NCBI GenBank assembly: GCA_048013815.1
Contig: CM106585.1
Coordinates: 11,222,001-11,286,000 of the forward strand
From: Setoptus koraiensis
Taxonomy: Eukaryota > Animalia > Arthropoda
Direction: 5' to 3'
Length of the DNA stretch: 64,000 nucleotides
Made by a program: the position numbers and the translations under genes. Positions 40,468 through 57,900 of this stretch are shown here, in pieces; within the stretch, counting starts at the first letter, position 1; every line of letters starts with the position of its first letter. The notes below the pieces were generated by a model. It did not search any database. It worked only from the letters and a program-made list of their open reading frames with translations, and was not told where the DNA came from.

Positions 40468-43400
40468 ATGGCTTCAATCAACGCTGAAGAGGAGGCTCTA
40501 AATGCCGTCAAAACGCACTCGTTTCAGATGAAATGCTCACTAGATAAAGGCCGGCTGATGGATGCATTGAACAATGCCTCTAGCATGCTTAATGAACTTA
40601 GAACATCATTGTTGTCACCAAAATCATATTATGAACTCTATATGGCTGTCACAGATCAATTGAGACATCTGGTAGCCTATCTAATGGAGGAATTTGAGCG
40701 AGGTAGAAAATTAGCGGACCTGTATGAAGTGGTGCAACATGCAGGAAATATTATACCTAGATTATATTTACTCATTACAGTCGGATTGGTCTATATGAAA
40801 ACTACACCCACATGCCGTAAAGAAATTCTCAAAGATTTAGTAGAGATGTGCGGTGGTGTTCAACATTCACTGCGTGGTCTTTTCCTTAGGAATTATCTAT
40901 TGCAAATGTGCCGCGAGGTTCTACCTGGACAGGATAGTGAAAATCATGGAACATTACAAGATTCATTGGATTTTATTCTTACTAATTTCGCTGAAATGAA
41001 CAAACTGTGGGTTCGTATTCAGCATCAGGGCCATTCAAGGGACAAGGAACGTAGAGAAAAGGAACGCATGGAATTGCGCCTACTGGTCGGAACTAATCTA
41101 GTGAGACTATCTCAATTAGAGGCTTTAGATGTCAATTGTTACAAAGAGACTGTCTTGCCTGGCATATTAGAGCAAATAGTATCTTGTCGAGATGCTATAG
41201 CACAAGAATATTTGATGGAATGTCTCATACAGGTTTTCCCCGATGAATTCCATATCGCCACGTTGCGGCCCTTCTTAAACAGCTGTGCCCAATTGATGAC
41301 CCGAGTAAATGTCAGGAGTATTACCATCGCTCTTATAGATAGATTGTCCAAATCGGAGCATGTTGACCTTCCAGATAATTTATTTGAACTACTGTCACAA
41401 CAAATATCAAACATGATAGAATCAAGGCCAGAGATCGAGATAGAGGGCGTTATTGCTATGGAGACGTCACTGATTAATTTCTCTACAAAGAGAATTAAAA
41501 ACAAAACAAAACAATCCGAGGCAATCAACTCAGTATTAAAGAGTGCCATGGTGATAATCAAAGAAAAAACAGGTTCAAAAACACTAGATGAAGATTCTTT
41601 GTTGAACAAAGAGCTTTTAAAATTCCTCAAAGTTCCAATCAGATCAGAAAATGCATCACAAGCACTAAATTCTATGAAACTTATTTTAAATTTAGAAAAT
41701 TATCGAACACTACTTGAAGAACTTCATCAGGTTTCATTGAATAAGCAAATTGCCCTATCTTTGATGAATCCGTTGATTGATGATGCAGAGGAAGAAACAA
41801 CACAAAAAGCAGGCGAAGAATCAGATGCGAAGCTTTCATTGAATGAGATTTCCCTATTTATAGATATTATATGTAAACCTCTAGTCAAAAATGTCCAAAC
41901 TGATGATTACCTACAACTCAATGAGGAAGAGAAAGAGGCTTTTATTGACGAACAAGTAACAATGGCCAAGTTTCTACATGTGTTACTTTCACCGCAAGTC
42001 ATGAATGACTTTAATTTTCACTCAAGATTTGAAGCGTTAAACAATATTGCTAATACACTATCCCAAAGCGGTCCCCATCGAATGAAACATACCTTTCCTT
42101 GTATAATCTTTAGAGCTCTCCAGTTGGTGGCCGACATTAACAAAGCTCGCCAGAACACAGAAACTGTTGATGGTCAAATTTCTATCAAGGATGTGTTTGA
42201 ATTCACTACGAACCAGATAGACAAATTAATATTAGGAGATAAAGATAGCACCTTTGTGGGACTGACTGTCAGACTGTGCCTGAAATGCTCTGAGGCTGCC
42301 ATGAAAACCGAGTTACCTGATAGAGAGAGCTTAGCTTCAGAATATGTAGCTCAAGCTTTCAGAGTTCAGGAAAATACCGAATTCAAAGCTGAGGACAAGT
42401 TAGAGAGTATACTATTCATCGTTAACTCAATCAAGGCCTTACAGTTTCAACAATACGACATTATATCGAGCCTGACTGAAAGTTGTTTTGAATACACTTT
42501 CGCTGGTTTTATCGCTGGAGACGATAGATGTCGTATCTTCTTGGCTGTAATGTCTGTGTTGGTTGATGTGAATAATGTTGATGGTAAACAACTTTGGGTG
42601 GTGGGGGGGGGGTGGGGGGGGTGGGGTGGGGGGGGTGGGGTGGGGGGGGGGTTGGGGGTTGTGGGGGGGGTGGGGGGGGTGGGGGGGGGGTGGGGGGGGG
42701 GTGGTGTGGGGGGGGGGTGGGGGGGGGGTGGGGGGGGGGTGTTGTGGGGGGGGGGTGGGGGGGGTGGGGGGTGGGGTGTTGGGGGTGGTGGGGGGGGGGT
42801 GTGGGGGGGTGGGGGGTGGGGTGGTGGGGGGGGTGGGGGGGGGTGTGTGTGTGTGGGGGGGTGTGGGGGGGTGGGGGGTGGTGGGGGGGGGTTGTGGGTG
42901 GGGGGGGTGGGGGGGGGTGGGTGGTGGGGGGGGGCGGGGGGGGGAGGGGGTGGTGGGTGGGGGGGTGGGGGGGGGTGTGTGTGTGTGTGGGTGGGGTGGT
43001 GGGGGTGTGGGGGGTGGGTGGGGTGGGGCGTTGGTGGGGGGGTGGTGGGGCTGGGGGGGTGGGGGGGTGGTGGTGGTGGGGGTGGTGGGGGGGGGTGGGG
43101 GGTGGGGTGGGGGGGGTGGGGGTGGGGGGGGGTGGGGGGGGTGGGGTGTGTGGGGGTGGGGTGGGGGGGGTGGGGGGGGGGTGGGGGGGGTGGGGGTGGG
43201 GGGGTGTGGGGGGGGGGTGGGTGGGGTTTGGGGGGTGGGGGTGGGGTGGTGGGGGGGGGGGTGGGGGGGGGTGGGGGTGGGGGGGGTTGGGGGTGGGGGG
43301 GGTGGGGGTGGGTGGGGGGTGTGGGGGGGTGGTTGGGGGGTGGTGGGGTGGTGGGGTGTGGGGGGGGGGGGGGGGGTGGGGGGTGGGGTGGGGGGGGGTT

Positions 43401-43957
43401 GGGGGGTGGGGTGGGGGGGGGTTGTGGGGGGTTGTGGGGGGGTGGGGTGTGGTGGGGGGGGGGTGGGGTGGGGGGGGTGGTGTGGGTGGGGGGGGTTGGG
43501 TGGGGGGGGGTGGGGGGGGGGTGGGGGTGGGGGGGGTGGGGTGGGGTGGGGGGGGGTGTGGGGGGGGGGTGGGGGGTGGGGGGAGGGTGGGGTGTGGGGG
43601 GGTGGGGGGGGGGGGGGGGGGTGGGGGGGGGGTGGGGGGGTGGGGGGGGTGTGGGGTGGCGGGGGGTGGGGGGGTGGGGGGTGTGTGGGGGGGTGGGGGG
43701 GGGGTGTGGGGGGGTGGGGGTGGGGGGGGTGGGATAGTTATCTCGATGATTTCATCAAAACTCTTTTTATGATGAAACAAGACAAAAGAGTTGGATATAT
43801 TAAGGAACTGCTAACACATCTGGAAGAGATCGTTAATAGAGCCGGTACTGGGTTCGCCAAATACATAGATTTCTTACGTGAGAGTATGGATGATAAGTTC
43901 CAAGTTAAAACTTCAATTCCAAAAATGTTAAAAGAGCTTCACATAGGCAGTGATTAA
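40468..43957 (+). CDS. VPS35: Retromer subunit VPS35, intronless; 784 aa if the G/T tract 42599-43733 is removed
   Basis: FQMKCSLDKGRLMDAL, LRTSLLSPKSYYELYM, IIPRLYLLITVG, RGLFLRNYL, QEYLMECLIQVFPDEFH. Excising the tract joins CTT TGG G|AT AGT (KQLWDSYLDDF) and gives a length typical of VPS35 (about 800 aa). Confidence 0.93.
42599..43733. repeat. 1135-bp aperiodic G/T-only tract inserted at a TGGG in VPS35 (probable sequencing/assembly artefact)
   Basis: Almost entirely G runs separated by single T, with only a handful of A/C. Flanked by TGGG on both sides. Length is 1 mod 3. Confidence 0.9.
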
Positions 43958-47202: not shown

Positions 47203-49580
47203 TGCTCTGGTGAGTCCAAGTGCAAGAAAAAACACAACAAACAAACGACAAATTTGAACAGGCCCCCCAACTAGCAACTTGGCGGGCCGCAATGCTCGAT
47301 GGTCTCAGTGGATCGAAATTCGTTATAAATAAATTGTTCGAACTTTTCCAGTATTTCGAGCTTGGAATTTTCCAATTTTTCCAATTTTTCAAATCTATGT
47401 TTCTCGCTTGGCGTGATGCCGTTCGTTTCTCGATTTCGGTTCTGCGAAATCCCCGAACTTTACTGATCTCTCTGTTGGTGCCCCCAAATTAGCGAATTAT
47501 GCGAACCCAATTATGCGGTCGGGCTTTTTTGCAGCACTCGATAGTGTCAATCTCAGCTGGTTGCGTCAGTCATGGTGCGGCATATCTGGCGCCCAATGAT
47601 TCATGAGTCGTGAGGCACCGGATGTTGGCGATGCTGGCAGCACACCGGTGCGTAGTCGATGGCAGTTGTGGGCCTCGTCGTCGGGTGGCGCCAAGCCGCG
47701 GCCAAGTTTGTTGGGAACTGGCCACGGCATCGGTTGTGTGTCACTTGTTATAATGTGGCTTGAGAGAGCGGGCCGGAATGCTATTAGGATTGTTGCAGTT
47801 GGACGGTTGTTTGCATTTGCATTGATTTGCGTTGATTTGCATTGTTTAAATAGAAGCTCTGTGAGTGCGCCGCCGAAACGCGAAATTCGGTAGTTGCTGT
47901 CGGAGGTATTATCTGCTTGTTGACACATTCTTTGGTGGCTGGCGCAGCGAACGCTGGCCAAAAGGAAGACGAAGACGAAGAAGAAGAAGGAGAAAAAGTG
48001 ATTCTTCGGTGCGCGTTCTTTGCGCGTTTAGCGACCGGTGTTGGCACCGCTGAGGCAGCTCAATGAAACGCGCACGAGCACAAAATCATCACGATGGCCG
48101 CATTAGGCCAATGAGTCGCAGTGACCATATTAAACATATTGCTTTTAATGGTTTCTGCTGCTAACAAGCTGCTTTATTTGCATTTTAAATATTTCAATCG
48201 CTGCTCGTCGCTGTTTTGGTAGTTGTTGTTGTTGTTGTTGTCGCTGTCGCTGTAAAATCTTCTTATAAAATAAAATTTGTTGACACAGGGCAAACAAATT
48301 TCCATGACTGATCGCCGATTTGAAGATTCGCAAGCGCATTAGCGTGCACGAGCACCGTCCATTGTGGCGCAGTGCCAGACGGGCGGGCAACAAGCGCCCA
48401 GAATCCCGATTCCGATCCCAATCAACGAGCATCGGCGATCCGCTGCGGATAAGTGGACACCACCGACGGGCTTGTTAGCGGCACTTGCGACGACACACAC
48501 ACACACACTCACCATAATACCTTTTTTCGGGACGCGCAAAATAAAATGTAAAGCGTGGGCCTGTAGCGGCCGCATCGCCACCTGACTGACAATTGTGAAA
48601 TGACTGAAACGACGCTGATAATAATATAATGATGGCCGCCAGTCTCACGCGCTCGCGCCAGTCTATTGGACGCCTAGTGGCCGAGGAATGTTTCCGATGT
48701 TCATTTTTGTTTACCTACTCTCCTCCGTTTCGGCCGGCTCTCGATTGTTTCTCGCGGGGCTTGCGAGGCTTGCGGGGCTCGAAATAAATCTCGCCGGTAT
48801 GTGTTCCAAATTGTTCCCAATTGTTGCCGATTGTTTCAAATGATGAACCGTGCGCGGCCAACGGGAGCACGGCGGTCAGCCGGCCCGGTGAGCCGGGCGG
48901 CCCGCTCGCGCTCACAAGTTGCGGCTCTCAACTTGCGAGTCACGAGGACACCCTGCCGGCGGCCCAGTGTGACACACTTGCCAATCGCGAACGTTCGCGC
49001 GCGCCGACCCGCGCCGACCCGCGCCGACCCGCATCGACCCGCGGCGAGCCTCGGCGAGCCAAAGGGCCCCGCGTCGGCTAATTGGCAGCTGCGTGCGTCT
49101 GGCCCGCGCTTTAATTAGCGCCATAGTTGACGCCACAACCGGCCCGTGGCGCTCGCAAACGTTGCACGCTCGTCACGCGAAAGTTTCAAAAGTTTTGCAT
49201 ATCCCTAGGGGGTGCGTCTATGGCAAGACTTGCTGGCGATCGCCAAAAGTGGCTTTTCGTTTGGGGCCGGCGCCAGTCGGGCCCAGTGAGGTGGCCCCAG
49301 CAAGCGGGCAGCGGTGCGAGCGTTTGCGCGCAAAATTGGCGCGCATTTCGAAAACAATTCGCGTGACATTTGGCCGAAAGCGTCGCCGAGACGGCAGAGT
49401 CTCATCATCGGCGTCCGATCGTCGGCGTCTGGTCGTCAGCGGCCGATGGTTCGGGCGTCGCAATTGTCGCTAATTGTCTTGTTGCCTCGTCACCGGTACC
49501 GGACGCCAGTGAGTCACTGGCGGTGGCTGAGAACAGCTCCGCGTCCGCCGGTGCGGTCCGCTGTCTGTCACAGGGCGCCT

Positions 49581-49664
49581 CAATCTGCCACAATCCGGCG
49601 CAATCTGGCGCAAGCTGCCTAAATCTGGCGCAAGCTGCCTAAATCTGGCGCAAGCTGCCGAAAT
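49581..49664. repeat. 20-bp tandem repeat x3 preceded by two degenerate 10-bp half units
   Basis: AAATCTGGCGCAAGCTGCCT at 49601, 49621 and 49641. Confidence 0.95.
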
Positions 49665-50764
49665 GTGCGGTGCCGCGAAAAGTGCACACGTCGGCGCTGG
49701 CGAGACTGCCGACGGGCGCGCTCGCCAGCGGCTCCAATTGATCAGCAGAGTGAGCCTGGCGCTGCGACTGGCGGCCACTTTTCCAGTTCGCGACCGTCTA
49801 GACACCGGCCTGGCCCAGTGGCGCGTGGGCTGGCAGCGCCACTGCCAGTGGAGCCAGCGTCATCCAGTTTCGGCCGGGCTCGCTCGGCTTCGATTGGCGG
49901 CGGCCAGCCAGCCAAAGAACGAGAGAAGAACGAGAGAAGAACGAGACTGTCGTTGCGACAGAGCAAGAACGAGTCGTGAGCGGATTTGCATGCCGACGAG
50001 TGCACGACGAACTGACGCTGATGCGGATGATGATGGCCAAGTTGCAATAACTCTGCCACCTCTAACAAGCATAGAGCATGCGTAATGAGAGAACGTTTTC
50101 GCAACATTCAACACTTTTGCACTGGAGCGTTCGTTTGTTTGTTGTTCGCTCGTTTCGCTCGTTCGCTCGTTCGTTCGCTCGTTCGTTGGCTGGTTCGCTC
50201 AATGTAACAACAGTGTTGATATCAGTGCCAACATCGGCGCTAACATCGGCGCTAATATCAGTGCACTGTGAAGTGAGAGCTGCCTCGAAGTCGCAGTCGC
50301 TGCAAATGTCGCGAAACGTGCCAACGTGAACCTATTCTGGCACCGCCGCTGCCAGTCTGGCACTACATTGTAACTTGCGCTCGTTCACTTGCGAACACCG
50401 ATAACGCCGCCGTTCTCCAGACGACATATTCCCTCTCCTCGGGCGCACCACACCACAACAACACACGACAACACACGACCACATACGACAAGATACAACG
50501 ACGAGATACAACGACACGATACGACGACGAGATATAACGAGACACGACAAATCAGACGTACACACACGAATTAGACAGGGCCAACAAATCAATCGTCGCA
50601 CTTGCCATTGCAACAGCCACTCGTTATTAGCAGCGACATTATTCTGGCACAAGCCTAACCCGTTATCCTCATTATCTCTGCCATTTCTCACCAATCTAAT
50701 TAGCCCAGCAACTCTAATTAGCAACGCCACCCGTCGTCGCTATAATCGCCAGCTGTACGGCACC

Positions 50765-52234
50765 ATGGCGGTGCTACAAGTGAAGGTCATTCTCATATTA
50801 TTATTGGGCCTCACACAACAACTATCGACTCTAGGTCAGACAGTGTCCTCAAAGCCACAAGCCACCTCAACTAGGGCCTCAACAACAACAACAACAACAG
50901 CGCACAGCGGCAAGCATACGCAGGCAATCCCAAAGCAATTCAATCAGCCAAACAGAATCACAAACCACAATAGCAACAATAGCAAGAAAGAGTTTTTAAA
51001 GCTCAAAGCCAGCGATCCAGACAGACAGCGACAGCATCAATTGAAGCACCATCGTCAACAATCGCAAGCTGTCATCAGCAACAATCATTACAATCACGCT
51101 AGCAAACTCAACAATCAAAACAGTTTGCTCGTGGCAGAAAATTGCTCATTTGGCGCTGAAACATACTCTGTAGGTGATAGATGGAACCCGGTTCTGCCGC
51201 CGTTAGGCGTACAAAGTTGCATTATTTGCACTTGCGAGGCCAAAAAGGCCTGCTATGAGGCTAAAGTTAAATGCAAAAACATTAAAAATGATTGTCCCCA
51301 ATTGACCTGCTCTAACGGCGACGCGCCCGTTATTAAGCCAGGCGATTGCTGTAAATCGTGCCCCGGAGACAAATCGCAACTGCCTATATTGTCGGTGTTG
51401 GAGCCTGCTGTTGTATCCGAATGTCAACCAGTTGTCAGTAACAACAAAAAATCAGACGCACACTCTAGTAATCGTGTTAAAACACCTAAAGAAATGCTCA
51501 GATCGCTTGGTAGTCCCAGTCACGGGGACCCGCTCAAGCCCGAACCTGACACCTCGGCGCAGCGAGACCCAAACGACAACACCATTCAAGAGACCCAAGT
51601 TGACAAGACACTAGACAACAAATGTCGCTACGAAGAGAAATCATATGAAGATGGCGTTCAGTGGAAAGCGTCTCATGACCCTTGCTCAATGTGCTGGTGT
51701 AAAGCGGGCACTGTATTATGTGACAAATTTGTTTGTCCCGAAATGCCACCACTGTGCCCAAATGGATTAGCTCCAGTGAAACCTGACGGCGAATGCTGCT
51801 TCATTTGTCCACCCAGAAAAGTAAAAAAGAGGCCCAATCATAGCAGGCCCGCTCCAACATCACCACCATCATTATCATCACCATCATCACCACCACCACC
51901 ATCGTCATCATCATCATCATCATCATCCTCAATATCAACATCATCTGCATCATCGATAGATTATCCCGACAACCACCAACCCGTTGGTTGCAAGCTGGAA
52001 GGCGATCAAGTTTTCAGGCTGCCAGGATCTAAGTGGCACCCGTACTTACCCCCATTCGGTTTTGATAGATGCGCCGTTTGCGAATGTTTGGCCTCTAATA
52101 TCACCATACAATGTATGAGAACCAAATGCCCCCCTTTAAATTGTCCGAAACGCGACGCATATCGAGAGAAGAGGGAGGATTGTTGTAGGAGATGCCCGTA
52201 CCCTAGTAATTCAACACAGATAATAGCCCAGTAG
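50765..52234 (+). CDS. sog: Short gastrulation/Chordin-like BMP antagonist, miniaturised (signal peptide + 3 CR/VWC domains), 489 aa, intronless
   Basis: Signal peptide MAVLQVKVILILLLGL. The first CR domain has the chordin CR1 hallmark (CTCEA...VKCKNIKNDCP), the second is CR2-like (QWKASHDPCSMCWC...VLCDKFVCP), and the third is CR3-like (GSKWHPYLPPFGFDRCAVCEC...DCCRRCP). Confidence 0.8.
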   Translation: MAVLQVKVILILLLGLTQQLSTLGQTVSSKPQATSTRASTTTTTTAHSGKHTQAIPKQFNQPNRITNHNSNNSKKEFLKLKASDPDRQRQHQLKHHRQQSQAVISNNHYNHASKLNNQNSLLVAENCSFGAETYSVGDRWNPVLPPLGVQSCIICTCEAKKACYEAKVKCKNIKNDCPQLTCSNGDAPVIKPGDCCKSCPGDKSQLPILSVLEPAVVSECQPVVSNNKKSDAHSSNRVKTPKEMLRSLGSPSHGDPLKPEPDTSAQRDPNDNTIQETQVDKTLDNKCRYEEKSYEDGVQWKASHDPCSMCWCKAGTVLCDKFVCPEMPPLCPNGLAPVKPDGECCFICPPRKVKKRPNHSRPAPTSPPSLSSPSSPPPPSSSSSSSSSSISTSSASSIDYPDNHQPVGCKLEGDQVFRLPGSKWHPYLPPFGFDRCAVCECLASNITIQCMRTKCPPLNCPKRDAYREKREDCCRRCPYPSNSTQIIAQ

Positions 52235-52492
52235 ATTTAGCAAGAAACCAGACCCACCAATATCATAAAATGATCATGTGCATAGAACCTAGATTGTTCA
52301 TAGTATATATAAATGTATATATATGTAGATATATATATATACAAGCGTATTCAGTATATGAGATAAAATTATTTATTGTGGAGAGGAGATTCATTTAACT
52401 AGTTTCCCATTTTGGATCTAAAAAACTAATTAATATGGTCTAGAGACCAATTCGTTTCCACCGATTTAAATAACGGAAAATAAGTGTAAGTT

Positions 52493-54937
52493 TCAAGTCT
52501 CGATTGCGGTGGGGCTAGTAGTACTATTATCTTCCGGGTCTAGCTGATTTTCGTCGCTGGCATGCTCGGTCTTATGCTGGACGGATGTTGACTCTTCCGT
52601 AGTCATGTCCGATTTACTACTACATGAATTGGTGACTTCCTCTGAATTTTCCTTATTCGTCTCTGGGGTTGTTGCTTTAGTAACTTTACGTTCTTGTAGA
52701 GCTCGACAAAGTTTCTCCAATGTCTCTATCTTTTTGTTGGCCGTAAGCATTTCATGGTCCCATTTTTGCTTCTCGGTAAGTAGTTGGGCCATTCTTTTAT
52801 CACTAAATTCATATTTAGATAGAAGAATCTTATAGTCCTGCTTAGATTGCTCTATCTGTTTAAGCATTTTCTTAGATTCAACCTGAAAGCGATTCATACC
52901 CTTACTTATGACAGCTTGACATTCATCATACTTACTGGCATAGCTGCTCAAGTCCGACCGAAGCTTTGCCTCTTGGCCCTCTATTCGCTGCTGCTGTTCT
53001 TGCATCATAGACAATATTTGTAAAAGCTCTTGTTTTTCACTTAAAAGTTTCTCTTTTTCTTCATTCTTTGATAGATTAGCCTTAGCAAGCTCTGTCTTAA
53101 TGAGCCGATTCTCTATATCCCGTTGCCTTAGTGTTGCCTCAACGCTTTTCTCCCAGTTGTCACAATGATCAAGGAGAGATTTCAATTTGACCTGTAGATC
53201 ATGGTTCTCCTGCCTAAGGAGCATGTTTCGTTGTTGATTTTCGTCAAAGAGTTTAATCACACCAGTAAGAGTGGATTGTACTTTGGTGGTCTGTTCTTTG
53301 GCTTTGTTCTGTTCACCCTTGATAAGATCTAAACTCTCTATCCTTATAGCATTGTTTGATTTTTGAAGTTCCCTGCATAAATTCTCCAATTTTTGTTTGA
53401 CAAGTTGTAACTTCTGATTATCCGACTTCAATTTTGAGCAACTGAGTAATAATTGTGCGTTCTGTTCGCTCAATTTGATCAAGTTTTTACAAACGGACTC
53501 TAACAAACTTGGATCATCCTTGATATTCTGTAAGCTGAGGAGCAAAGCAGAGACTTTTGTGTCTGTATCAAACTTGTTGATTGCTGTTGACTCGTTCGAC
53601 GAATCAATATTAGATTTACTCGCTTCTTGATTAAATGAGGCACTAGTGCTAGTTTTTGTATTCTTTTTCTTATTATTGATATGCTCTTTTTGCCTATGGT
53701 TCGAGTTGACTGTTTTTCCATTGTTGGGTGGTACGCAGGTTTTCTGTGATACAGGCTTCGCCTGGGACAATTTTTCGAGAGAGCTTTCAGCAATTGTTTC
53801 AGGAATTTGCTTGCCTTCTTGATTAATTTTATCACTTAATGATATAGTTGGCCCTTGTACCAGACTAGAATTGAGATTAGTTTGACTTAGCAACTCTTGT
53901 TTTTCCTCTTTAACCTCGGCAATCAATTCACAACCTGATAATTGAGACTGTAATATTTCATTATGACCAGTGTCTACTTCGGTCTTATTTTCATGCTTAT
54001 CAATACATTGAGCATCCTCTGGTTGGTGATTATGTTGCATACCATCAGTAGTTGGACTTATGTCGTTGTTATCTTGTTTAGAGATTACATCATTAATATC
54101 ACAACAAGTACTTTGTTGGTTTTGGTTGGTCGACTCGACATCTGTGTCGCCAGTTTTGCCAGTGTGATCCGATGACACGGGCATTTCGTTTTTCGTGCCT
54201 ATGACGTCTGTCTGTGGATCAACTACAGGTGCCACTACAGACTTATCAATGAGCGTTGGAGAATTCTCTGATTGCCGGCGATCAGTGGGGGGCTCCTCGA
54301 TGCCCGATAATTTATGTATGTCCTCTTTTAATTTGATTAATTGATTGTCGTAATTTTTCGCCGATTCGCTCTCACCTTTAGCCTTTTGTTTCTCTAAGGC
54401 CGCTTGGATGCTCAATTTAATATCTTGTGCCCGTTTAGAGTATTCGTCTAGCGTTGAGCAGCTGTTCTCTAGATTCGATTGTGTTTGAGTTGAATTTTGA
54501 CCATTGTTCAAACTATTGTTACCACTATTATTATTGTTATTATTATGATTTGTTTGTTGAGATGGGTTAGTTTTGAGTTTTTCCTGTAATTGACTCCTAT
54601 GTAAGGCTAAACTAGATTGCTTCTGGTGGTTCTTTTTGGTTGAACTGGCCGATTTGGGTCCATTGGCGCCAGGCACTGTTTTTTGGGCTCTGTTGGGCGC
54701 CGACACGCTAATGTTGGTTCTGGTGGCCCTAGAGGATTTGCCGTTGTTTTGTGGCGCTGTTTCTTTGGACGATTGTTGTTTATTGTTTGTATTATTATTG
54801 CTAGTGTTTGAGGTGGCAGTGTTGCCGGTTGTGGGCGTTGTCTTTGGGTCGGCGGCTCGCTGTTGGTTAATGTTGGCCAAGCTGGTTGTTGCTGTTGCTG
54901 ATTGTTTTGATTGTTGCTGCTTCAACTTGGAACTCAT
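52493..54937 (-). CDS. Taxilin-family coiled-coil protein (~814 aa from ATG 54937; the 5' end may be spliced differently)
   Basis: Taxilin-domain signatures KQKLENLCRELQK, LRSDLSSYASKYDECQ, KMLKQIEQ, KIETLEKLCRALQ, preceded by a long N/Q/S-rich N-terminus. The upstream 120 codons of the ORF look intron-like. Confidence 0.88.
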   Translation of the reverse strand: MSSKLKQQQSKQSATATTSLANINQQRAADPKTTPTTGNTATSNTSNNNTNNKQQSSKETAPQNNGKSSRATRTNISVSAPNRAQKTVPGANGPKSASSTKKNHQKQSSLALHRSQLQEKLKTNPSQQTNHNNNNNNSGNNSLNNGQNSTQTQSNLENSCSTLDEYSKRAQDIKLSIQAALEKQKAKGESESAKNYDNQLIKLKEDIHKLSGIEEPPTDRRQSENSPTLIDKSVVAPVVDPQTDVIGTKNEMPVSSDHTGKTGDTDVESTNQNQQSTCCDINDVISKQDNNDISPTTDGMQHNHQPEDAQCIDKHENKTEVDTGHNEILQSQLSGCELIAEVKEEKQELLSQTNLNSSLVQGPTISLSDKINQEGKQIPETIAESSLEKLSQAKPVSQKTCVPPNNGKTVNSNHRQKEHINNKKKNTKTSTSASFNQEASKSNIDSSNESTAINKFDTDTKVSALLLSLQNIKDDPSLLESVCKNLIKLSEQNAQLLLSCSKLKSDNQKLQLVKQKLENLCRELQKSNNAIRIESLDLIKGEQNKAKEQTTKVQSTLTGVIKLFDENQQRNMLLRQENHDLQVKLKSLLDHCDNWEKSVEATLRQRDIENRLIKTELAKANLSKNEEKEKLLSEKQELLQILSMMQEQQQRIEGQEAKLRSDLSSYASKYDECQAVISKGMNRFQVESKKMLKQIEQSKQDYKILLSKYEFSDKRMAQLLTEKQKWDHEMLTANKKIETLEKLCRALQERKVTKATTPETNKENSEEVTNSCSSKSDMTTEESTSVQHKTEHASDENQLDPEDNSTTSPTAIET

Positions 54938-57900
54938 GACGCTACAATGAATGGTGTTAGTGGGCAAATTCCGATATTGTTCCGATGGTGTTGGCTGGCG
55001 GCCTGAAATTGGGCCCCGGGCGCGGGCTCGGTCGCTTGGTGGCGATAGCACAATACAGTTACAGATACAGAGACAATATAGATGAGGACAGATGCAATTT
55101 ATAGCATAATTGTACGATTGGACAATTGCTCGATAATTGGCCCCTAGGATAATAATGATATAATAAATAAATAGACTGGCGGCTATAAATAAATATCTGT
55201 TTGCGTGGCTCGTCTTGTGCACACGGCGTGTCGTCTCACATTCAATTAGGCAGCACAATTCGCTTCCTTCCAACTGGCCATACTCATTTGTCGACAATTT
55301 TCAGCTCCAACGACAGTGCAATTGTCGAACAAAACATGGCTCTGTTTGTTCTTCGCTACAAAAACATCCCCTGCACTAGAAAAAGAAGCGTTCGCAGAAG
55401 CACAAGTGAAAACGCTGCTGCCTAGAGAAAAAGAGAAAGAGCGAAAAAGCGAAAAAGAATTCTTTATTCACGATGCCACCAGCTGCACACACACACACGC
55501 ACACCCCATCTTGGCGTGCCTTTGCACAGGCACATTGCACTGGAGCGTCTGTCCGTTTGTGTGTGTTTTGGTGCTTTCTCTGCCAGTTCACGATAGAGAA
55601 CTTTCAACAATTAGTGCGCGTCTCTCAACTCAACTCCAACGAGCCGAGGCGCCGCTAAATACATAAATCGTTTCATATGTACACATGTGCTCTGTTCGAA
55701 ACTCGATTCGAATTTCGAATCGCGAAGTGGGATGCTTCAGAAATTCGAACGCGCAACTTATCTCGTATACATGTGTCCGTATTTACAACCGTATATCCAA
55801 CATGCTCTGTCCTCGCAACAGCCATACGCCACACGCTGTCACAATGGCGGATACCAGTGAATAATGGCGCCCACTAACAGCTCACTGCTCCAATTCATGC
55901 CCCTTGTCAACTAACCATAAGTGTGCAAGCTAACTTTTGCATAGCAAATTATGTAACACAAATGCACTCTTATCCGATGGCCTCACGGAGCCTCCCGAAG
56001 CGCAATGAATCTGCGCCAAGCCGACAAACACTAAATCATGATACGCATATCATGATACACATGCTCACTACATGTATGTGTTTGTTGTTGGCCAACACAA
56101 GTCAGCATCGTAGCCCCATTAGCTTGCCAACCACACCAAGTGTATCGTTGCAAACATGTTACATAACTACAACTAGCCCCGACAAGTCAAGTGGAGCGCG
56201 CTGTTGTGGCTAGCGGTGTTGTGTAACTCACAAACAGAAGTCAACAAACATCGTTCATTTTTATCTCATATATCACACCATACGTCTGCTCAGAAAACAC
56301 GCTGTACATGATAAACAAAGCCAGCTAACAATGTCCTCAAATGTCTCAACGTCTCAACATGGAAATAATTCAAAATGTCTATCTGATGCACTGATCTTGG
56401 CCGTGCCCTCGCAGCTTCGGCTATCAACTTGCAAATGGCCATTGATACAAATATGGGCCATAAATAAATCTATGTTTGTTTCGGCGAAATGAGATTATTT
56501 GAGAACACAATTTGACTCTTGAGCGATGCCCATTTTTCATCGATTTCGGCTGACGAGTAACAGAGCTGCTCGCTTCGGCACCCTATTCTAGTTGCAATCA
56601 ATTCAAGATATTTCAGCAATCGTTGGATTTTAATTAGTCGATATAAAGTATACGAATGTCGCCCATTTAGATCCACTCTTGAGATTTTAACGCACCTCCG
56701 AGTTGCACGGAAAAATAATGTCTTGACAAAGTTGTATATTAACTCAATCGCCCATTGATAACTATTTTATCGGTGCTACGACATAATGAGTCATACGACC
56801 CAAATGAAAAATCTTCTTGGGTCAAGTTCATCGTATCCAATAACCAATAAATTGTCGCATAGGTTTTTTTGTACCAGATTCTCTCAAGTCTAACCGATTG
56901 TTGTGATGAGTTTTCATCGATGCATAAACACATAATAATCTAGAAACTATCGACCACAGTCAATGTGTGGCCTGAATATCCAGTTCCTCAATGTAGGTGG
57001 CAGTTGGCAAAATAAGCCGATCACAATTCATGATCATCCTGACCGGTAACGCTTTGATGGATTGCCGTTGGTCAGCTTGAGAAGATGGCCCGTTTTCGGT
57101 GTTTATCTTGCGATGAACATTGGGAGAAAACGATACTGTGTCAGTCATTTAAATGTGTCCAAAGCAATAGATTTGTGCACCGAAAATAACATGGGAATTC
57201 ATTGTTAGAAACTAGCAATTCAAATTTCCAGCCGCCATTTGGCCACCTTGAAACATTACCTGTTGCTTACTTGACCACATTGTATCACATTGCGTCACCA
57301 TTCTACCAGATCGTATCACATCACTGTTTTGGTATGTATGGTGTGTGACTGAAGTAAGGTTGATTCTAACAATAATTGTCACCTGTTCTGTATAAACACA
57401 CAAACTTATATTATGTATACAGAACAACAATTTAGCTGGCTATCTCTCGTTGAGACTAAAACTAGAAACTACTAATCAGTTCTCTGAGGACATCAACGTA
57501 AAACTCTATGACATCCTTAAGAGCTCAAGAGTGGCCGCATTGTCATGATCTATTATGCAAATGTCAAGTTTTTTGAGCACTGCTTACAGTCGTAAAACTA
57601 CATTGTTGACATTATTAATAAGGTCGACGATACGTGAAATTGCTTTTATCTATTCAAAACAATTATAGTTTCCAGTTAACAATGCAGTTATCTTCCTTTA
57701 TCCATAAAATAGCTTACAACTATGACTTGCCACCCTATGTCCAGTATACTTTCGGTGTGATCTTTTTGAATGTCACTATACCTTTACCTTTCTCTATCGC
57801 TGTCTGTAAAGGTGTGTTGCTATTGCTATTTACTCGCAACTGTGGACAACCATCCATCTGCATATTCTCTATCAATAGACAATGACATAATTCTGTTTAG

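Follow-up and report, generated by a model that had tools for sequence, protein, structure and literature searches.

The acariform mite studied here very probably has a single orthologue of Sog/Chordin that has been reduced to a secreted protein of the form CR1-linker-CR2-linker-CR3, that remains a BMP antagonist, and that stands at the end of a series of reduced Sogs in mites. Sog/Chordin (fly Short gastrulation, vertebrate Chordin) is a BMP inhibitor that patterns the back-to-belly axis; it is about 850-1050 aa long, carries CR1, four CHRD repeats, CR2, CR3 and CR4, binds BMP and Tsg through CR1 and CR3, and has its C-terminal Tolloid site between CR3 and CR4. The protein described here, which we call mini-Sog, resembles it in keeping orthologous CR1, CR2 and CR3 in that order, in its predicted secretion, in being encoded by a single gene, and in having Tsg, Tolloid and BMP ligands alongside it, but it is about half the usual length and has neither the CHRD repeats nor CR4.

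Mini-Sog is encoded in the window (the whole stretch of DNA analysed, 64,000 nucleotides) by one intact open reading frame with no internal stop codons, and its parts follow one another from a signal-like N-terminus to a short tail in the order given in the table. A Pfam scan of the protein returned three VWC stretches (E 2.9e-24) and otherwise nothing of note. Human chordin (PDB 9rd6) aligned with it in three ordered blocks (E 5.2e-34), with residues 124-205 matching vWC1 (38-121), residues 285-357 matching vWC2 (693-762), and residues 407-482 matching vWC3 (772-845). The open reading frame, Pfam, PDB 9rd6 and BLAST thus bear out an earlier, sequence-only reading of this DNA, which had described a 489-aa protein in a single frame with CR1, CR2 and CR3 in order; that reading also called the gene intronless, which is true of the reading frame. 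In eriophyoid genomes, up to 80% of genes are intronless (preprint 10.64898/2026.08.24.746826).

Features of the mini-Sog locus, in positions of the window
Feature	Positions	Strand	Residues	Remarks
Vps35 open reading frame	40468-43737			1089 aa
GC island	48600-50100			1.5 kb; ~63% GC (flanks 37-50%); ~700 bp upstream of sog start
mini-Sog open reading frame	50765..52234	+	1-489	ATG start; 489 aa + stop
Probable signal peptide	50765..50839	+	1-25	read from sequence; hydrophobic AlphaFold helix 2-19, pLDDT ~80
N-terminal low-complexity stretch	50840..51139	+	26-125	Cys-free; pLDDT <50
CR1	51140..51364	+	126-200	11 Cys; extra C163 in K-A-C-Y-E-A-K-V motif
C163 codon	51251-51253	+	163	in CR1
CR1-CR2 linker	51365..51619	+	201-285	85 aa; disordered (pLDDT <50); lone Cys C220
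C220 codon	51422-51424	+	220	in CR1-CR2 linker
CR2	51620..51814	+	286-350	10 Cys
CR2-CR3 linker	51815..51982	+	351-406	56 aa; Ser/Pro-rich
CR3	51983..52204	+	407-480	10 Cys; W-H-P-Y-L-P-P-F-G-F motif
Tail and stop	52205..52234	+		9 aa; ends before the CR3-CR4 linker motif common to other mite Sogs
AT-rich spacer	52235..52492	none		258 bp; mini-Sog stop to convergent taxilin stop (52493)
Taxilin gene	52493..55297	-		convergent neighbour, outside the Sog system; PF09728, E 2.6e-43

Mini-Sog departs from other Sogs in the stretches around its domains. The CR1-CR2 linker, put at about 90 aa by the sequence-only reading and measured here at 85 aa, stands where other Sogs carry a CHRD stem of ~550 aa, and the linker between CR2 and CR3 is 56 aa long, as against ~12-18 aa elsewhere. 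Other Sogs have only ~20 aa ahead of CR1, whereas mini-Sog has the long stretch of residues 26-125; the sequence before CR1 and that between CR2 and CR3 are both of low complexity. The protein also has an extra cysteine in CR1 and a lone one in the linker, in addition to all 30 canonical cysteines, which brings the counts to 11 in CR1, 1 in the linker, 10 in CR2 and 10 in CR3. An AlphaFold model built from a 23-sequence alignment contains three confident VWC folds (pLDDT 77-93); all of its linkers score below 50 and thus conceal no further domain.

Two observations concern the surroundings of the gene. The GC island upstream lies inside a 5.6-kb stretch without long open reading frames, is single-copy in the genome and matched no Rfam family; it could be regulatory. 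The Vps35 reading frame exceeds the usual length of ~800 aa by ~290 aa, and Vps35 of the eriophyoid Fragariocoptes setiger is likewise long (1053 aa). Among known sequences the Vps35 of the window is closest to this F. setiger protein (55%), followed by those of other acariform mites (Halotydeus, Tetranychus, Oppiella, Brevipalpus and Sarcoptes). The affiliation with Acariformes is well supported by this, and an eriophyoid is the most likely source, in keeping with a small genome, two large contigs and an abundance of genes in single open reading frames.

A short Sog could in principle be a product of an incomplete gene model, of a collapsed assembly in which the stem and CR4 had been missed, or of a decaying pseudogene. 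Introns are possible for sog, since the Tolloid and Tsg genes of the same genome carry them. However, CR1, linker, CR2, linker and CR3 are read in a single unbroken frame, which leaves no place for a stem exon between CR1 and CR3. Coding sequence for the stem or CR4 was not found in the two-contig, 48.8-Mb assembly, the canonical cysteines are retained in full (30/30) in folds that are predicted with confidence, and relatives independently display the same trend toward reduction. We therefore regard an artefact or a pseudogene as very improbable.

The evidence for a missing stem comes from similarity searches of the genome (48.76 Mb, two contigs) in six frames. The Pfam CHRD model had no matches in the genome even at E<=10. 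On its own this model is a weak test, as it fails to recognise the stem of an authentic insect Sog, and for that reason we added the stem of an insect Sog, a profile built from 16 full-length Sog stems, and the CHRD1 region of Sarcoptes as queries, none of which matched anything in the genome. As a positive control, a whole horseshoe-crab-type Sog found CR1, CR2 and CR3 at the mini-Sog locus (E 3e-21 to 3e-13), with its stem and CR4 unmatched in the genome and only weak single VWC matches elsewhere; by this search the mini-Sog locus is the sole Sog-like locus in the genome. The isolated VWC sites elsewhere were considered as a possible detached CR4 and set aside, being of a generic kielin/CR2 type and lacking the W-H-P...P-P-F-G signature.

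Closer to the gene, local tblastn and filter-free profile searches in six frames found no relics of the stem or of CR4 in the window, and the 258-bp spacer downstream of mini-Sog contains no CR-like sequence in any frame and no relic of CR4, just as had been claimed for the interval up to the convergent taxilin stop. The CHRD stem profile, run with filters off against mini-Sog itself, gave no matches at E<=10; a stretch of the linker ('RVKTPKEMLRSLG') that we considered as a relic of CHRD1 is accordingly unsupported as such. The proposal of a naturally stem-less Sog holds: Pfam, stem, profile and whole-Sog queries detected neither a CHRD stem nor a CR4 in the open reading frame, the window or the genome, and the genome search that had been suggested turned up complete Tsg and Tolloid genes but no second sog and no CHRD. 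It is possible that a very diverged stem lies elsewhere in the genome, as this would be compatible with six-frame similarity searches.

The affiliation of mini-Sog with Sog/Chordin is supported by whole-protein comparisons and by its individual domains. An exhaustive search of 1.84 billion representatives gave 426 matches, the best of which were full-length Sog/chordins of ~900-1050 aa; the named best matches were chelicerate (Tachypleus 'chordin-like' and Oedothorax 'Chordin'), and the best whole-protein match was a Sog-like protein of Oppia nitens (E 2e-63). In BLAST searches, each domain best matched the cognate CR of full-length Sog. We then placed the domains in a maximum-likelihood tree comprising 143 CR domains, each named for its position within its protein and aligned over 66 columns; bootstrap values were not fully settled, and the fine branching of this tree is rough. 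CR3 of mini-Sog, which is 64% identical to that of Oppia, fell inside the Sog CR3 clade (support 99/97), adjoining oribatid CR3, and CR1 fell within the CR1-class clade (96/93). CR2 fell in a poorly resolved class of CR2, kielin and CHRDL second domains, nearest to Sog CR2. The per-domain phylogeny that had been called for therefore identifies CR1 and CR3 as Sog domains but does not settle the class of CR2.

These comparisons also bear on whether mini-Sog might belong to another three-VWC family, such as CHRDL/neuralin, or be a Cv-2/kielin-type fragment. CHRDL1/2 and neuralin/ventroptin resemble mini-Sog in their length (~450-500 aa), in their three VWC domains and in lacking CHRD, and the tree assigns the first two CHRDL domains to the broad classes that also contain CR1 and CR2. 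They nevertheless represent another lineage with far lower overall similarity to mini-Sog: CHRDL-type proteins (among them one from Trichoplax and Saccoglossus neuralin) occupy clades of their own, the Sog CR3 clade that holds the third domain of mini-Sog excludes every CHRDL domain, and the first domain of mini-Sog groups with mite Sog-type CR1. Scores point the same way, with E ~1e-16 for CHRDL-like proteins as against 1e-50 for chelicerate Sogs, and with a Sog-like protein as the top whole-protein match. Cv-2/BMPER and kielin/KCP are characterized by at least five VWC domains plus a VWD/TIL region, whereas mini-Sog has three VWC domains only and, by Pfam, no VWD or TIL domain. Membership in any of these other families is extremely improbable. 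Because the placements of CR3 and CR1 are strongly supported and the CHRDL clades are separate, we take mini-Sog, from its sequence, to be an orthologue and descendant of Sog and not a CHRDL, Cv-2 or kielin gene.

Reduction of the stem extends to other acariform mites. We surveyed mite Sogs with the CHRD stem profile, filters off, and found CHRD1 only in an oribatid-like protein (P0175; 618 aa, E 2e-37), in Sog of Dermatophagoides pteronyssinus (578 aa, E 2e-18), and in 'Chordin' of Sarcoptes scabiei (615 aa, E 1e-15). Sog of Tetranychus urticae retains at most a doubtful trace of ~25 aa (E 0.009). The profile matched no stem in the Oppia nitens 'Sog-like isoform X2' (501 aa), in P0009 (579 aa, four CRs), or in mini-Sog (489 aa). 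The Oppia isoform consists of CR1, a 68-aa linker, CR2, CR3 and CR4; in Tetranychus, the spacing from CR1 to CR2 is ~105-125 aa; and in at least nine further representatives CR1 and the beginning of CR2 share one open reading frame, just 60-110 aa apart. Recognisable CHRD domains are present in ticks, spiders, horseshoe crabs and insects. All of the other mite Sogs with a readable C-terminus (Sarcoptes, Dermatophagoides, Oppia, P0175 and P0009) have kept CR4, and among the mite Sogs compared its loss is seen only in mini-Sog. The reduced Sogs of Sarcoptes, Dermatophagoides, Oppia and Tetranychus resemble mini-Sog in a stem cut down to one CHRD or none and in closely related CR domains; they differ in that the sarcoptiform ones keep CHRD1 and that none of the four has the extra pair of cysteines found in mini-Sog.

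The spider-mite gene forms the first part of a model that carries the name 'ADAMTS9'. RefSeq 'ADAMTS9 isoform X1-X3' of Tetranychus urticae (P0103/P0157; XP_015782648, XP_015782646) start with Sog CR1 (83-157) and CR2 (263-322 or 281-340), and to judge from their sequences these models look like spider-mite sog fused with a neighbouring ADAMTS gene, which hides sog in the annotation. Other public annotations label the short mite proteins just 'Sog-like' or 'Chordin'. We found no description of reduced mite Sogs in the literature searched, which does not span all journals, and no close relatives in a metagenome scan.

The short linker of Oppia gives a weak but collinear alignment to the central part of an oribatid CHRD1, and this points to decay of the Oppia stem in place. 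We also considered whether the intronless mini-Sog could derive from a processed, stem-skipping splice form like Oppia X2; this is unsupported, as the linker alignment fits decay in place better than the clean skipping of an exon. The simplest reading of the order of events, with polarity inferred from outgroups and not from a dated tree, is that CHRD2-4 were lost early in Acariformes, that CHRD1 was then lost repeatedly, and that the lineage of mini-Sog alone has dropped CR4. Mini-Sog would then be the far end of a series that runs from stems with all four CHRD repeats, as in ticks, spiders, horseshoe crabs and insects, through a single repeat in sarcoptiform mites to none here. Judging by the sequences compared, stem reduction is a general trait of acariform mites and not peculiar to this animal, so miniaturisation need not explain the loss of CHRD2-4. 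The sequence-only reading had tied the short protein to a miniaturised body, and this proposal finds no support.

A set of related proteins may extend the series or may represent a side branch. About 15 representatives of 470-720 aa each have two CR1-type modules and lack CR2 and CR3 (P0015, at L020:10001-11686, and P0011, P0014, P0019, P0021, P0023, P0025, P0026, P0029, P0031, P0032, P0037, P0046, P0051 and P0085). Every one of their modules has the same cysteine pair as C163 and C220 of mini-Sog, which suggests an extra disulphide specific to the lineage. In the tree, the CR1-CR1 domains form one clade (99/94) with CR1 of mini-Sog and CR1 of P0009, and a profile of the CR1-CR1 proteins scores CR1 of mini-Sog at 113 bits, that of Oppia at 89 and that of a horseshoe-crab-type Sog at 80. 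The metagenome contig that carries P0015 is 86 kb long and comes from a compact, intron-poor eukaryote. In the mite genome there is no separate CR1-CR1 copy, P0015 matching only CR1 of mini-Sog (46% identity), and no gene order is shared between the mini-Sog and P0015 loci. The CR1-CR1 proteins may be Sog orthologues that have been reduced further, or a lineage-specific family of paralogues with no member here.

The partners of Sog are intact in this genome. Tsg (E 9e-31) is encoded by a gene with one short intron (G000:C2:1392870-1393723; L017:3871-4724, minus strand) and has both its N- and C-terminal domains; an upstream exon carries the signal peptide and the Cys-rich, BMP-binding N-terminal domain. 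The downstream open reading frame taken alone, with its false start codon, mimics a Tsg without a BMP-binding domain, and we rejected the possibility of such a Tsg because that domain is on the short upstream exon. The Tolloid gene (G000:C1:14096002-14101579; L016:3-5580, minus strand) has several introns, unlike most genes seen here, and encodes a complete protein with an astacin domain, five CUB domains and two EGF domains. Its best astacin match opens a 908-aa open reading frame that encodes astacin, CUB1 and the first part of CUB2; exons farther downstream add the remainder of CUB2 and then EGF1, CUB3, EGF2, CUB4 and CUB5, the layout of a canonical Tolloid, so that a Tolloid truncated to two CUB domains could likewise be rejected. 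Long poly-Q and low-complexity insertions lie inside astacin, CUB1 and CUB2. The genome has five TGF-beta loci, one of them clearly of the BMP5-8/Gbb type, three more of the BMP class, and one activin-like or ambiguous.

How a chordin without a stem behaves is known from an engineered human protein. When human chordin is made without its four CHRD domains, it continues to co-purify with TWSG1 and BMP2/7 and inhibits with an IC50 of 4 nM, as against 6 nM for the full-length protein, a difference to which the authors attach no meaning; BMP1 no longer cuts it after vWC1, and its affinity for glycosaminoglycan falls 88- to 241-fold (PMC13382577). The same structural paper, from 2026, calls the purpose of the large four-repeat stem 'still not obvious' (PMC13382577). 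In this construct vWC1 is joined almost directly to vWC2 (PMC13382577), an architecture like that of mini-Sog; it is a human protein that keeps vWC4, whereas mini-Sog occurs in nature, is devoid of CR4, and carries long flexible linkers. The N-terminal domain of Tsg binds BMP and its C-terminal domain binds vWC1, vWC3 and vWC4 of chordin, and AlphaFold models favour vWC4/CR4 as the dock for Tsg in chordin and in Sog (bioRxiv 10.1101/2024.07.08.602551). Our own complex prediction for residues 400-489 of mini-Sog with the C-terminal domain of Tsg returned no call (score 0.00), which speaks neither for nor against an interaction.

Because mini-Sog keeps CR1 and CR3, binding of BMP and Tsg and antagonism of BMP outside the cell would be expected of it. 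The flexible linkers that flank CR2 (85 aa and 56 aa) would replace the stem as a spacer, and CR1 and CR3 could then reach one BMP dimer; Tsg would complete an inhibitory complex with mini-Sog and BMP, from which Tolloid would set the ligand free. Without the stem, the complex would be expected to travel and stick differently, through much weaker binding to glycosaminoglycan, and to be cut differently by Tolloid, while inhibition would not be abolished. Three traits are likely to differ from those of full Sog: retention by heparan-sulphate proteoglycans and hence range, processing by Tolloid, and affinity for Tsg. A lower affinity for Tsg is expected because CR4 is gone, and the docking models suggest that its absence could weaken recruitment of Tsg. 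The CHRDL proteins, which are BMP antagonists that also bind Tsg, offer a second comparison, and mini-Sog probably works much as they do.

Short, CR1-based forms of fly Sog, termed 'Supersog' by Yu et al. in 2000, reportedly have an altered inhibitory range and an altered sensitivity to Tolloid. These are cleavage products of full-length fly Sog, whereas mini-Sog is genomically encoded and has CR2 and CR3. Mini-Sog might resemble them in being a local, Tolloid-resistant inhibitor of BMP, with the axis patterned without Sog-mediated shuttling. Tolloid might not cut mini-Sog at all, because the region of the C-terminal site between CR3 and CR4 is absent and the N-terminal site, after vWC1, is uncut in engineered stem-less chordin (PMC13382577); the dock that the models favour for Tsg is missing as well. 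Against this, Tsg also binds vWC1 and vWC3 (bioRxiv 10.1101/2024.07.08.602551), and the 85-aa linker has many Asp residues that may provide new cut sites. In addition, complete Tolloid and Tsg genes have persisted in a genome that readily loses genes, which argues that the Sog module still operates, although both proteins have other substrates and roles. We consider a Tolloid-resistant, local inhibitor of this kind unlikely, though not negligibly so. A working but altered Sog-Tsg-Tolloid module is more likely than a system free of shuttling, because the partners are intact and chordin without CHRD domains still forms a complex with Tsg and BMP and inhibits normally. The earlier suggestion of a rewired, shuttling-free BMP system is thus unsupported, given complete Tsg, Tolloid and four BMP-class ligands and a CHRD-less chordin that still inhibits.

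A broader and more speculative possibility, to which we assign a similarly low chance, is that acariform mites are a natural deletion series of chordin, from four CHRD repeats to one to none and then to loss of CR4, perhaps on to the CR1-CR1 proteins of compact genomes, in which the axis is patterned without a stem and shuttling has been replaced by local inhibition. If this were true, a whole clade of arthropods would pattern its axis without the stem, here by means of a Sog that may have become immune to cleavage by Tolloid. The occurrence of forms with four, one and no CHRD repeats in related animals, with Tsg retained as seen in this genome, appears to be a natural experiment on the function of the stem. 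Mite Sogs could be used in existing assays of BMP and Tsg binding, heparin binding, Tolloid cleavage, and rescue of a fly sog knockout (bioRxiv 10.1101/2022.05.13.491850) to learn what the stem and CR4 do. In wider terms, acariform mites have lost the chordin stem by degrees, and this opens the functions of CHRD and of CR4 to direct tests.
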